A DNA stretch of 64,000 nucleotides from Octopus sinensis (GCF_006345805.1 NC_043002.1:61566001-61630000), one strand, 5' to 3'; counted from the first letter of the stretch, positions 2,231 through 61,789 are shown. Translations and numbers: made by a program. The notes: generated from the sequence alone by a model not told the origin.

Positions 2231-3008
2231 ACTGCCGCGTATAAAACAATGTTGATAGCGTTATTAACACACGCTAACATGTCCAAGAATGTAATAAATA
2301 CGTCGTCACTGAAAAACCATTAGAAAGTAATGTATAGACACAGGAAAGGTTATACGTGATGTAGATCTTCGTTGAAAATTCTGGCCAAGTTTCGAAGGCT
2401 GGAGTATTTTATAAATCATGAGAATGAGACATGAGGAATAATACTATAGCAGGTAGAAAAGAATATAATACGATTGCAACACACAATTTGTATTCATAAT
2501 TGTTTATAAGAATCATAATCATTTTGTAAATTATAGCAACACAGATAAGAAGTGCAAACACTACCATGTAAGGTTTATATCGTCCGGAAGAATAAATTTT
2601 AGGAAAGGGATGCAAAATTGCTCCCAGCCGTTCAATTGATATGAGTACTGTAATCCAGGAGTAATATATATTAAAAAAACAATGACATGATCTCCACGGT
2701 TAGACTGGATAATATATTGGTATCTGGAGCCAATAACTGTAGAGAATAAGATACCCGTATGATTCTCGGACAGATCAGAAAAATCGAAATCATATCTACT
2801 GAAACTAGGCGTATGAGATAGGGAACGATTTTATTCTTACGCATATTCTTCCTGCAAAATGTTGCCATGGCTGTTATATTCCCGATAGTTCCAAACGTAA
2901 ATAGCATTATAGAACAATATCTTATGGACGTAATGAAATAAATATTTGCATGATTAACTTCCAGGCTATTGTTGGTCACTGTATCCTTTTAGTTATGTGA
3001 TTTACCAT
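2231..3008 (-). pseudogene. GPCR subfamily B pseudogene (close paralog of 16263-17180)
   Basis: Fragment ORFs 2671-2979 and 2409-2615 are near-identical to the 16263 protein. Lesions: -1 indel near the start, extra A in an A-run (~2673-2679), +1 base near 2426, ~55-bp deletion over ICL3/TM6 (~2352), and the 3' end replaced by (TA)n. Confidence 0.9.
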
Positions 3009-3149
3009 TATTTAATATGTAAAGTATTCCTGGCAAAACTAAATAAATTTTAACCTTGTTTATATACATATATGATATAATATAATATAAATAATATATA
3101 ATTATATGCATATATACATACATATATGTACACACCTATATATATATGT

Positions 3150-3440
3150 ATATATACATGCATATATGGGTACAAGACATAAAAAAAACGCTTAACACAA
3201 TGACGAACGAAGACATAAAAACAAAGACATGGTAACGAACTTTTTTTCGAAGAACAAGCAAAACAAACAGAGAAACGAGACATACTACTTAAAGAATATT
3301 TCCCTTCTTCATTTGTTCCTGTTTCAACTACGCCGCATTGGAAGGCTATGACAAGACGCGACTTCGTTGAAACAGTCCTACCCGCAAAGCAAACTGATTA
3401 AAATTTGTGATTTTTTGCTGAGGTGAAAGTGGTATCATGA
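3150..3440. repeat. Dispersed non-coding repeat (other copies ~26210-26400 and ~39780-40030)
   Basis: Shared ATATGGG(T)AC(A/G)GGACAT-AAAAAAACG-TTGAACACAATGA...GAACTTTTTT...AGAAACGAGAC core in three places. Confidence 0.75.
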
Positions 3441-57745: not shown

Positions 57746-58413
57746 ATTTGAAAATGCTAAAGACCATCGAAACATAACACAAGGTACTCAACATATCCAA
57801 ATATTTATAGACGAGAGATTTGATATTTTCCCTCCAAGATTACCATGTGCGTCATATGTACCGCAGAAAAAATTGCAGTTTGCCACCAGAGAGTGAAATA
57901 ATCATTACAGATATATATATATATATATATATAATATAATATAGATATATATATATATATATATTATATATATATATATAATATATCATATATATATATA
58001 TATCTATATATATATAATATATATATATTCTGAGAATGGAGTAATTGGAGCGAGAACCTACACGAAAACGAAAAGTGTCGTTGAAGAGATGACAGATGTG
58101 TGACGAAACATTTCTGGACAATGCATATGTGTTAAAATAATAAAATATGAACAGTCGTAAACAAGTGAAGGTAAAAGTATATGGTGCGTTTCTCTGTTTG
58201 TCAAAGCAAAAAAACCCCAAAAAAACATCCTAAAATACAACAATATCTCTTTCAACACACATCGGGTATATTGCAACATAAATTGATAAACACACACACA
58301 CTCATATGCATACATATATAGAGATTATACAGTTGTACTTGATTGAAAGAGACAATGATATAATTGATGTTTCGTTAAGTTATTATATTATGTGTAAATA
58401 AGGCGAAAGTACT

Positions 58414-59268
58414 TTAATTTCCTATGCTCGGCAGCGTATAAACACTTCTTCTATGAACATCAGTGTGCTTAAAACATATTTTTCTCAAATTGTTGCGAAA
58501 TGATTTACTTACCAAAACATATAATATAAAGTTGATACCGTTATTAACACACGCTATCATATCAAGTAACAAAAATATATTCTTCTTACTTTTGGAGTTC
58601 AAAAAACTTAGAATCGCGTAAATAGACAAAGGGAAGGTTGTCAACAAAAACACACTGTTAATTGTTATCACGAGGTAAATTGAATTTTTCGATTGCGATG
58701 TACATCTTCTTTGGATGTTCTGGCCAAGATTTGAAGGTTGCAGTATTTTATAAATCATGAGAGTAGACATGATGACCAATAACGTAGCGGGTGCGAACGA
58801 ATAAAGGAGAAATGCAGCGCACATTCGGTAACCGAAATTGTTTATAAATATTATTATCATTGCGTAAGTTACAGCAACGGAGACAAGAAGAAAAAACAGT
58901 ACAATGAAAGGTTTATAACACCCAGAAGAATGTAGTTTGGAAAAGGGGGAAAAAATGGCGACCAGGCGTTCAGCTGATATTACTACAGTAATCCAGGACG
59001 AAAACATGTTCAAACCAAATGATATCACTCTGTATGTTTGACTGGTTAAAATACTCTTTTGTGGAGTCTGCAATTCTAATGAATGAGATTCCCATATGAT
59101 TCTTGGACAATTTAAACAAATGGAAATCATATCTACAGAAACTAAACATAGAATATATGGAACGACTTTATTCTGACGCATATTCTTCTGGCAAAATGTT
59201 GCAATGGCCATTATATTCCCGATCGTCCCAAATATTAATATCATTATACAACCATATCTTATTGACAT
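58414..59268 (-). CDS. Class A orphan GPCR, subfamily B; open frame but both homologous start codons lost (first ATG at 59268 gives 284 aa; CTG at 59316 would give 300 aa)
   Basis: All 7TM motifs intact (FGTIGN, VDMISICLNCP, ISAERL, SFAP, TTFP, NNGINFILY). The in-frame upstream region, back to a TAA at 59350-59352, has no ATG. Confidence 0.8.
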   Translation of the reverse strand: MSIRYGCIMILIFGTIGNIMAIATFCQKNMRQNKVVPYILCLVSVDMISICLNCPRIIWESHSLELQTPQKSILTSQTYRVISFGLNMFSSWITVVISAERLVAIFSPFSKLHSSGCYKPFIVLFFLLVSVAVTYAMIIIFINNFGYRMCAAFLLYSFAPATLLVIMSTLMIYKILQPSNLGQNIQRRCTSQSKNSIYLVITINSVFLLTTFPLSIYAILSFLNSKSKKNIFLLLDMIACVNNGINFILYVLVSKSFRNNLRKICFKHTDVHRRSVYTLPSIGN

Positions 59269-61789
59269 AATGAAATAAATTATTGTATAATTAACATTCA
59301 AGCTACTGTAGGTCAGAGGATCCTGTTCCGTTATGGGTTTTCCAATATATTACTCGAAGAAGATTCCTGGCAAATCCTTCATTTTCATTTTGTTTTACCA
59401 TTTATCACTTATGCTTTCGTAACACCTATAAAACTATAATCGTAATCACTGATAATTGTCCAGTATATGAAAATAGCCAAGCATATAAATGTTTATTTAT
59501 ATCTTTCTATTAATATAAATATTCTCCGTATAGAATGCCTTTCGTAGTGCAAAGAGATTTAAACTTTAGCGGGTAGAGGGACAAATAGACTCCTAAATCT
59601 CTTATTCAACAGCGTTAATTCCTGATATCATTTCCATTCTTTGTAAGACGGACCTTTTATATATAAACATATGTATTTTTTGTACTAAACGTATGTAATA
59701 ATTCTTTTTTGTATATCGACTTGCATATACTTACGTCTCTCTCTCTCTCTCTCTCTCTCCTCTCTCTCTCTCTATATATATATTATATATTAATATATAT
59801 ATATATATATATATATAGATATATAAGTATAAACAATATTTCTGTATTGTGGGTATTGAATCTGCTGAACTGAACAAACTTGCGTATCAGGTGAATAGTT
59901 GTTCCGATATAGATATTTTTGTCATGGTTTGTACCATTTATTTATAAAGTTGTACGTATGTATGTATGTATGTATGTATGTATATGTGTGTATATAGTGT
60001 ATATATATATATATATATATATATGTGTGTGTGTGTGTTGTGTGTGTGTGGTGTGTGGTGTGTATATATAGAATATATATATATATATACACAGGAATAA
60101 ACGCATATATATTGACTGCACAGAAAGGGGGAGAGAGAGACTGACAATGTGGTAGTGACAGAAATCTATATAGACTGGATAGATTAAAAGACAAGGAGAC
60201 GTGTTGAGTGAGAGCGAAACTGAAACAGCAAGATATAAAGAAAAGACATTGATTGGTCTCTTTTCATTGGTTCATTTCTAATACATCTTCTGTTAGTATG
60301 TATATTGAATCCTGATAATCATAACAGTAACGATGGTCTATGTATATATATATATATATATATATATATATATATATATATATATATATATATATATATA
60401 TTGATAGATAGATAGGTAGATAGATAGATAGCTAGATAGATAGATAGACCTCGGCGGAATTTGAACTCAGAACCTAACGACAGACAAAATACGGTGTACT
60501 AACGTTTCTGCCAGCTCACATACTTACACACACATATATATACATACATATATATATGCATATATATATATATGCATATATATATATATATATATATATA
60601 TATATAAACACACAAATATATGTATGTGTGTATATATTATATATATATATATATATGTGTGTGTGTGTGTGTATGTGTGTGTGTTTTTGTGTATACATAA
60701 ATAGAGGCAATTGCATATAATACATGTATATACATCCCTATTTATCTATATCTATATCTCTCTATCTATCTATCTATCTATCTATCTATCTATCTATCTA
60801 TCTATCTATCTATCTATCTATCTATCTATATATATATATATATATATATATACATAGACCAAGATCAATATCAAAATCCTTAGATATATATATATATTTA
60901 TTTATCGTGACACACTTTAGACACTATAGACACACTTTCTGTGCCCTATCAGTATTTGCAAAGGGAAGCCATACTTCCCGTCGTTAACTTATGATACATA
61001 CGGACTCAAGTTTCTGTGTATTGACCCCTCATCGTCGTGTGACAATCACAGTTGTCGATGGGAAGTAGGCTCCCTTCACAAATACTTATACCTTTTTCCA
61101 GTATCGATAGACACTGATATCGAAAAAGTGTAAACAAGCAATAATAAATCTCAGAGCGAGTTATAAACAGTAGCTACAACACATCGTAGTAACATTCATG
61201 CTTTCGTGAATTTCAATAAAAATTTCATTCATAAGATCACTGCGTGGAAGACACATGTTTCTCATTTAACTCAAGCACAAGTTATATCTGTGATGCTTGA
61301 TTCTGCCATATATGACATAATTCTTTTAATTGCAAGAACACTGCCGCAAATAAATGAAACGCCAGGCAAGAAGGTCTTCGAGATATTTAGTTAGTTTATT
61401 AAGTATATTACTTCTCAAATCAGTTCTAATTTACCATCATCTTCCCTCCGCCTTTATGGGCTTATGCGCAAGAGATTCATTTAACAGTGACATGGCAAAA
61501 AATGTATTTCAGGGAACAATTTTAAAATTTTCTACCGTTTGCTGTATTGCATCAGACGAATGAATTTCAATAATCTAAAATAAACATATTCCGATTTAGA
61601 CACAAACACGTAAGCATACACACATGCACACGCTCAAAGAATACATATGCATACGCACACACGCACAAACACAAACTATCAAGGTGGCTATTCGCAATTT
61701 CCAATCGAAAGGCGACAAGTATAGTCGTCACTAACGTGATGGAGGCTGCTAGTGAGCACCAGTATTGCTAGAAATAAGAGTCAAGACAG

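Follow-up and report, generated by a model that had tools for sequence, protein, structure and literature searches.

Here we describe a tandem array of 12 related G-protein-coupled receptor (GPCR) loci in a 64,000-nucleotide stretch of the Octopus sinensis genome (GCF_006345805.1, NC_043002.1:61566001-61630000), referred to below, at its full length, as the window. The structural and evolutionary features of the array leave almost no doubt that it belongs to an octopod lineage-specific subfamily of orphan rhodopsin-class (class A) GPCRs; the subfamily is probably signalling-competent. We tentatively assign its members a role as candidate chemoreceptors for variable external or conspecific chemical cues, which is the most likely of the roles considered, at slightly less than even chances.

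All 12 loci are minus-strand, spanning 2230-59349, and no plus-strand copy turned up in an open reading frame (ORF) listing and a tblastn search of the window with the seven open frames. The copies are arranged head-to-tail within 57 kb and have single-exon coding regions (Table 1). A first-pass annotation, made from the sequence alone, had reported a minus-strand tandem array of 12 members, and tblastn returned exactly 12 loci, all minus. It had also counted seven open and five broken copies. Seven frames are indeed open and five are broken, but one of the open frames, R7, has no usable ATG, which gives six intact copies, one start-less and doubtful copy and five broken ones. Under eukaryotic start rules, the conserved ATG is kept in R1, R2, R4 and R6. 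R3 and R5 are without the canonical ATG, owing to a substitution in R3 and an A-run frameshift in R5; both retain the conserved Met that lies 33 residues ahead of N1.50, and N-glycosylation sites remain upstream of the first transmembrane helix (TM1). At the 5' end of R7 (59230-59420), 'ATAATGGAA' has become 'ATATTGGAA', out of frame, and TTG stands at 59301 in place of this conserved Met. The first in-frame ATG of R7, at 59268, lies within TM1. The copy may have become a pseudogene very recently, or translation may begin at a non-AUG codon.

The encoded proteins carry the core of a class A receptor and lack several of its common embellishments. All seven open copies pass the Pfam 7tm_1 (PF00001) cut-off of 30.5 bits, narrowly, with 31.7-40.2 bits. 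With Ballesteros-Weinstein numbering anchored on N44, D72, R127, P186, P239 and N272/F273 of R6, the copies keep N1.50, D2.50, S3.39, E3.49, R3.50, P5.50, F6.44, P6.50, N7.45, N7.49 and Y7.53, along with helix 8 and conserved second and third intracellular loops. The exceptions are R2, the only copy with Ser instead of Pro at 5.50, and R4, the only copy whose sodium-site residue 7.45 is Lys rather than Asn; judging from these substitutions, both may be functionally divergent or weakening copies. Absent are the disulfide between Cys3.25 and the second extracellular loop (ECL2), W4.50, W6.48 of the CWxP motif, P7.50 of the NPxxY motif and Y5.58, all of which are frequent in class A without strictly defining it. 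Counted back from R3.50, position 3.25 is N/S/S/S/F/S/S in R1-R7, and the mid-TM4 Trp is missing from all seven copies. TM6 reads (T/V)TFP, which places Thr at 6.48, TM7 reads N(F/I)xLY, which places Phe or Ile at 7.50, and position 5.58 is Ser. The intracellular segments SSWIxVxISxERL, RYKP, YKIL..LGQ and SKSFRxNL are found in the copies as well, and every motif listed in the first-pass annotation was recovered. The contrast drawn there between a conserved cytoplasmic face and a variable outer face also holds: mean pairwise identity is 0.65-0.77 in the inner segments, with 0.68-0.77 for inner TM3, the second intracellular loop (ICL2) and helix 8, versus 0.24-0.27 in ECL1, the top of TM3 and ECL3.

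Two cysteines and the C-terminal tail complete the description of the proteins. A Cys at 5.40 ('Y..CA') is present in 7/7 copies, within the TM5 helix and with no partner at 3.25. That it represents the old ECL2 cysteine with a new disulfide partner was considered and rejected, as no loop Cys is conserved and the closest relatives outside the window have no C5.40. The Cys at 2.58, in 'LNCP', is confined to one of the two subfamilies described below, subfamily A. The intact copies end, after helix 8 and a conserved Cys, in the tail motif 'NRxxVY(S/T)L' plus 3-5 residues (for example at 50069-50125), and the same tail occurs in P0001 and P0002, two of the database relatives described below. The conserved Cys after helix 8 is a candidate palmitoylation site, and the tail may be a trafficking or an arrestin/phosphorylation motif.

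To visualise the arrangement of the helices, we used an AlphaFold2 (AF2) model of R6 built on a 51-sequence alignment, which reached a pLDDT of 85.7 and a pTM of 0.83; an earlier run with nine sequences reached a pLDDT of only 57 and was not used. The seven helices of the model span residues 20-51, 62-91, 103-132, 145-167, 171-202, 217-248 and 255-279, followed by helix 8 at 281-291. A Foldseek search against the PDB gave TM-scores of 0.62-0.71 at 13-20% identity and a probability of 1.00, with aminergic, peptide and lipid receptors intermixed. The predicted fold is that of a generic class A receptor, in agreement with the Pfam matches and with the class assignment made earlier. In the model, the connection between TM4 and TM5, that is ECL2, consists of three non-helical residues (168-170), while about seven polar residues separate the helices by sequence. 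The short TM4-TM5 loop noticed in the first pass is therefore seen in a confident model, and this turn, together with the missing Cys3.25, agrees with the lid-less pocket proposed at the same time. The orthosteric pocket is probably open to solvent.

The positions lining this pocket fall into two groups. Y5.46, S5.47, S6.52, D7.39, A7.42 and C7.43 are identical in 7/7 copies, and positions 2.60, 2.64, 3.29, 3.32, 3.33, 3.36, 5.38, 5.39, 5.42, 5.43, 6.51, 6.55, 6.58 and 7.35 vary. This pattern suggests a conserved floor (Y5.46, S6.52, D7.39 and C7.43) beneath a variable rim, and an acidic anchor in such a position would fit the recognition of a common chemical group in different contexts. One alternative is that the ligands are hydrophobic or partition into the membrane, like lipids, sterols or terpenoids, and would enter laterally or through the open top, as in the lipid-type class A receptors without this disulfide. 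An entry route of this kind is compatible with the missing Cys3.25 and ECL2 lid, many rim positions are aliphatic or aromatic, and the structure of the cannabinoid receptor CB1 ranked second in the fold search, though it was not set apart from the other matches. However, the fold search showed no preference for lipid receptors, and the invariant D7.39, S6.52 and Y5.46, together with a polar or charged rim (K, R, E and N at 2.60, 2.64, 3.29 and 3.36), suggest polar or charged ligands instead. We consider lipid-like ligands improbable.

To place the array among known proteins, we ran an exhaustive profile search over 1.84 billion representatives. The family emerged as a discrete set, with about 14 representatives above 200 bits and 23 with E <= 1e-30, below which only a generic class A tail followed. 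Word-indexed homology searches gave only two close relatives against the roughly 14 core members found by exhaustive profile; the index misses most members. The family core is restricted to Octopus entries and sequencing-run assemblies. Two members are the UniProt Octopus entries A0A0L8II40 and A0A0L8GGA3 ('GPCR family 1 profile domain-containing protein'), and six further members carry UniParc identifiers in the same numeric series as Octopus entries, UPI0006957B26 and UPI00069516DE being examples of these identifiers; the Octopus entries in UniProt and UniParc are mostly unnamed fragments. Among the representatives, which we number P0001 onwards, the Octopus entry P0003 matches R3 at 86% identity, and for R4 and P0022 the identity is 89%, measured over 81 residues. 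An exact look-up of the R6 product gave no record. By these matches alone, the window comes from an octopod whose genome is not the annotated one that supplied those entries. The nearest named non-cephalopod proteins are lophotrochozoan orphans with at most 29% identity. These matches are in line with the cephalopod family proposed earlier and with the view that it has no one-to-one ortholog among conserved neuropeptide receptors.

The relatives can be arranged in three tiers. In the first, which comprises the window copies and P0001-P0012, Cys3.25 is absent and R3.50 and P5.50 are 58-59 residues apart. The nearest outgroups (P0016, P0017, P0021 and P0023) form the second tier; they possess Cys3.25 together with a second Cys located 18-20 residues ahead of P5.50, and their R3.50-P5.50 spacing is 63-70. 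The third tier consists of wider lophotrochozoan relatives with both cysteines and a spacing of 74-85. Because the outgroup tiers keep the cysteines and longer loops, the disulfide-less, lid-less state is derived and was reached stepwise. A near-outgroup paralog, P0019 (Octopus A0A0L8GGA3), has lost both disulfide cysteines independently and keeps a longer ECL2 (R3.50-P5.50 of 70); loss of the cysteines is thus separable from shortening of the loop.

The same comparison changes the status of several motifs that the first-pass annotation had presented as departures from the class A norm. N-F-x-x-Y, T-T-x-P, W3.41 ('SSWITV'), Ser or Asn at 5.58 and the absence of W4.50 are found across the superfamily, including annelid, brachiopod and gastropod proteins, and W3.41 (SxWITV) and NFxxY in TM7 are present in all 25 sequences of our wider alignment, A2. 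Since they are ancestral to a large lophotrochozoan/GPR139-like superfamily, and partly shared with human GPR139, NFxLY, TTFP and the missing W4.50 are not adaptations of the array. Only the loss of Cys3.25 and the shortening of ECL2 by 10-25 residues are specific to the octopus-level clade.

The 12 loci divide into two subfamilies, A and B (Table 1), which are interleaved along the array in the order A B A B A B B A A A B A. The alternation suggests an early duplication of an ancestral A-B pair as one block, followed by single-gene duplications. DNA similarity between paralogs is limited to the coding sequence and about 100 bp on either side, at 65-81% identity, with the exception of psiA and R2, which share 85% and some flank. 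A larger duplication at 85-86% nucleotide identity, including downstream flank, pairs 1-744 with 11255-11997 and 2230-3061 with 16344-17233. psiA, the youngest duplicate of R2, and R2 itself are part of this relatively recent segmental duplication, of which one daughter has already decayed.

To estimate the selective pressure on the array, we computed ratios of nonsynonymous to synonymous substitution (dN/dS) by the pairwise Nei-Gojobori method and took medians. The ratio is 0.35 overall, 0.25 in the inner half of the receptor and 0.44 in the outer half, with paralog dS of 0.35-1.5; in the two youngest intact pairs it is 0.79-0.81 in the outer half and 0.23-0.24 in the inner half. A contig from another species (Logan contig from SRR11869385, here L002) is orthologous to the R5 locus, to which it aligns for 1.9 kb; 950 bp of this stretch precede the start codon. 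L002 is genomic, because this alignment runs through the 950 bp of upstream non-coding DNA. The two genes differ by dN 0.158 and dS 0.477 (dN/dS 0.33), and their upstream non-coding distance, 0.42, is close to this dS; the constraint on the intact genes is thus real but moderate. R5 and R6 (dS 0.35) arose by a duplication that postdates the split from the species carrying L002 (dS 0.48). This recent duplication, and the disabling of five or six of the 12 copies, bear out the birth-and-death evolution suggested earlier. The gene on the contig (L002:976-1905) is intact and encodes 309 aa, but Ser replaces the near-universal Asn1.50 ('GTIGSITA'). A block of about 60 nt directly upstream of the start is conserved in subfamily A (17181-17250, 46423-46500 and 51002-51070) and at L002:900-975, and could be a 5' untranslated region or a core promoter element. 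A conserved 'TTCAG', roughly 35 nt ahead of the ATG, was considered as a splice acceptor and is not supported, as the ortholog in L002 has 'TTCGG'.

Another possibility is that the family is decaying or non-canonical, and that the intact copies are no longer ligand-gated switches but are constitutive, act as chaperones or co-receptors, or are being lost. The high proportion of disabled copies, the missing W6.48, P7.50, Y5.58 and W4.50, the unusual residues Lys7.45 in R4, Ser5.50 in R2 and Ser1.50 in the L002 ortholog, and a fairly relaxed dN/dS of about 0.33 all favour such a reading. However, the missing motifs are ancestral to a large, old superfamily that includes the functional GPR139. Moreover, a dN/dS of 0.25 in the cytoplasmic half and the near-invariance of ERL, helix 8 and ICL2 point to selection for coupling, and the frames are still open at dS up to 1.5 while their flanks have diverged beyond recognition. 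We regard a decaying or non-canonical family as very unlikely.

Among receptors of known structure, human GPR139 scored best with the wider profile. Searched against the PDB, this profile, A2, gave GPR139 at the top with 100.8 bits (next 91.9), followed by the peptide receptors NTSR1, GALR2, GHSR, SSTR and NMUR2. The octopus-clade profile A1 did not single out GPR139, since GALR2, NMUR2, GPR139 and SSTR1 all scored 35-38 bits. In the printed alignment, GPR139 resembles the array in SxWITV (W3.41), in NFxLY in TM7, in having no Cys at 3.25 and in having no mid-TM4 Trp, and the automatic names of relatives include 'GPR139' and 'B0563.6'. Unlike the array, GPR139 keeps W6.48 and DRY, and its R3.50-P5.50 spacing, counted from the alignment, is about 69 rather than 59. 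With moderate confidence, sequence comparison indicates that the octopus family is a derived branch of an FMRFamide-receptor-like/GPR139-like superfamily that expanded in lophotrochozoans.

The array also invites comparison with other receptor families. Melanocortin receptors are class A receptors that have no TM3-ECL2 disulfide and a very short ECL2, and they signal normally. The MAS-related (MRGPRX) receptors, also class A, have no such disulfide either, possess a shallow, wide-open pocket without W6.48, and signal normally as well. The likeness of the array to both is a functional analogy only, because neither family is among the top 60 profile matches or the top fold matches, and by this sequence evidence the loss of the disulfide and lid in the array is independent of theirs. 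The Pfam Srw model (PF10324) matched the copies with 32-54 bits, above its cut-off and above the 7tm_1 scores, over model positions ~190-318 of 319 only, corresponding to TM5-TM7. Nematode Srw proteins are chemoreceptors derived from peptide-receptor-like class A GPCRs and occur in tandem arrays. The array does not match the full length of the Srw model and the taxa are far apart, so the match most likely reflects shared FMRFamide-receptor-like ancestry rather than membership.

This ancestry raises the possibility that the array encodes receptors for endogenous ligands, either FMRFamide-like or MIP-like neuropeptides or internal modulators, that have diversified for reproductive, neural or immune signalling. 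The ranking of GPR139 and peptide receptors by the wider profile favours such a role, as does purifying selection at a dN/dS of about 0.33. GPR139/142 fall in one clade with protostome MIP/AST-B, FMRFamide, myosuppressin, proctolin and RGWamide receptors (PMC8514136), the roughly 450 'FMRFamide-R-like' genes of Lymnaea, many of them in tandem groups, have been treated in a reproductive context (PMC11589774), and testis-specific clusters occur among the cephalopod-specific class A expansions (PMC6408891). On the other hand, no one-to-one orthologs were found outside the clade, and 40-50% pseudogenes together with species-specific duplications would be unusual for neuropeptide receptors. A structured ECL2, normal for peptide receptors, is absent from the octopus model, and the outer half of the receptor changes at roughly twice the rate of the inner half. 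We judge an endogenous-ligand role to be unlikely, though it is the strongest of the alternatives.

We then propose a model for how the array could act in chemoreception. The clade has lost Cys3.25 and almost the whole of ECL2, of which a three-residue TM4-TM5 turn is left, and the pocket is probably open. Different paralogs probably recognise different small ligands, which may be cationic or resemble amino acids, and all paralogs probably signal through the same G protein. It is tempting to speculate further that an octopod-specific branch dropped the ECL2 lid and disulfide to become minimal open-pocket chemoreceptors, with D7.39 as an anchor and a paralog-specific rim, for water-borne or contact amines, amino acids and basic peptides in sensory epithelia. 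We hold this more specific version to be rather doubtful. If true, octopuses would possess a metabotropic chemosensory system beside their ionotropic chemotactile receptors.

Several observations weigh against a chemosensory role. Given that Y5.58, W6.48 and P7.50 are missing, activation may be atypical. Positive selection on the outer face, which the first-pass annotation had named as a supporting sign, did not appear: dN/dS above 1 was not found in any region in pairwise comparisons of the inner and outer halves, the outer half reaching at most about 0.8, and diversifying selection is thus not shown. The characterised members of the FMRFamide/GPR139-like superfamily are peptide receptors. 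A functional, ligand or expression study of the octopus array family was not found in the literature. Skin and sucker are among the tissues that express cephalopod-specific class A expansions, but so are testis, gills, embryo and nerve cord (PMC6408891), and a non-sensory role therefore fits equally well.

Octopus chemosensation is now explained mainly by the chemotactile receptors, which are ionotropic and nicotinic-receptor-like (van Giesen 2020 and Allard 2023, as cited in PMC11886862), and cephalopods may also use GPCRs as chemoreceptors. Like the array, the chemotactile receptors are lineage-specific, tandemly expanded and candidate chemosensory proteins; unlike it, they are pentameric ligand-gated channels rather than seven-helix G-protein-coupled receptors. 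The six intact paralogs, with a shared cytoplasmic face and differing pocket rims, form a compact set of candidates for deorphanisation.

Two published surveys describe comparable expansions. Ritschard et al. (2019) reported two class A expansions specific to cephalopods, one of 63 genes and one of 21, with tandem co-localisation, branch-level positive selection and mostly non-brain expression (PMC6408891). Their group 1 includes 828-924-bp single-exon genes, a size that fits the array copies, and some of these genes are biased to skin, sucker or embryo (PMC6408891). Looked up in the tables of that study, the two accessions A0A0L8II40 and A0A0L8GGA3 were absent (PMC6408891). Nath et al. (2025) surveyed 238 lophotrochozoan genomes, among which were 19 from cephalopods, for class A GPCRs confined to single lineages, and described tandem arrangement and pseudogenes; they report that the typical TM3-ECL2 disulfide is absent, cephalopods included, give ECL2 as long, at 25-30 residues, and propose a chemosensory role (PMC11886862). 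The array resembles these expansions in its tandem arrangement, in having no one-to-one orthologs outside the lineage, in its mixture of full-length genes and pseudogenes, in its variable extracellular halves and in the absent disulfide. It differs from those of Nath et al., with their ECL2 of 25-30 residues, in its three-residue turn and R3.50-P5.50 spacing of 59.

The first-pass annotation had left it undecided whether the family was already described. The class, the chemoreceptor inference and the missing disulfide have been published (PMC6408891, PMC11886862). No mention of a near-complete loss of ECL2 in the octopus clade was found in the available portions of the published accounts of these expansions. 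Apart from its unusually minimal ECL2, the array is an ordinary example of a catalogued phenomenon. The data set of Ritschard et al. was built from UniProt entries with PF00001 (PMC6408891). Surveys based on PF00001 may under-count the family, because its proteins barely reach the cut-off and the older Octopus annotation contains most of them as fragments. The shortening from 74-85 through 63-70 to 59 residues between R3.50 and P5.50, with both disulfide cysteines lost en route, represents a stepwise natural minimisation of ECL2 in one lineage, and informs how much of the extracellular architecture of class A is dispensable.

Table 1 Receptor loci and other features of the window
Feature	Position	Strand	Description
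psiA	2230-2985	-	Pseudogene, subfamily A; 3 frameshifts, one stop, TM6 deletion of 17 aa; 3' end gone beyond TM7
R1	4613-5542	-	Intact, subfamily B, 309 aa; canonical ATG
R2	16263-17180	-	Intact, subfamily A, 305 aa; Ser at 5.50 in place of Pro
psiB	19527-20455	-	Pseudogene, subfamily B; 1 in-frame stop and 1 frameshift; ~60% aa identity to R3
psiC	27043-28112	-	Pseudogene, subfamily A, heavily decayed; many stops; ~470-bp gap separates TM5 and ICL3 pieces
R3	31468-32370	-	Intact, subfamily B; 300 aa from conserved internal Met; a start at ATG 32445 would give 325 aa
R4	34798-35724	-	Intact, subfamily B, 308 aa; Lys at 7.45 in place of Asn
psiD	43965-44837	-	Pseudogene, subfamily A; three frameshifts; ~70% aa identity to R5
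R5	45520-46422	-	Intact, subfamily A, 300 aa; starts at conserved Met 33 residues before N1.50
R6	50069-51001	-	Intact, subfamily A, 310 aa; copy used for structure model
psiE	54346-55678	-	Decayed pseudogene, subfamily B, with stops; interrupted by interspersed repeat 55062-55536
R7	58414-59349	-	Frame open over all seven helices, subfamily A; both conserved starts lost; status doubtful
Mariner-type transposase remnant	9245-9856	-	Pfam Transposase_1, 75 bits; between R1 and R2
Interspersed repeat, ~300-470 bp	55062-55536, 18527-18926, 19022-19440, 24362-24661, 61871-62167		At least 5 places
Unit like a short interspersed nuclear element (SINE), 167-184 bp	36633-37880 and 41156-41749		Contains 'GGCGGAATTTGAACTCAGAAC'; short arrays in opposite orientation, ~3.5 kb apart, between R4 and psiD
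AT, TTA and TATG microsatellites	30247-30671, 25940-26214, 47890-48081 and others		Up to 140 copies

The window is AT-rich (29-39% GC). Many long microsatellites fill the intergenic DNA and give rise to spurious long ORFs. The ORFs at 13262-13996, 52216-52899, 53371-54051 and 8733-9185 were rejected as genes, having no Pfam match and lying in low-complexity or repeat DNA, and an Rfam scan of the window gave no match. Among the copies of the interspersed repeat, one is inserted in psiE and two flank psiB in inverted orientation.

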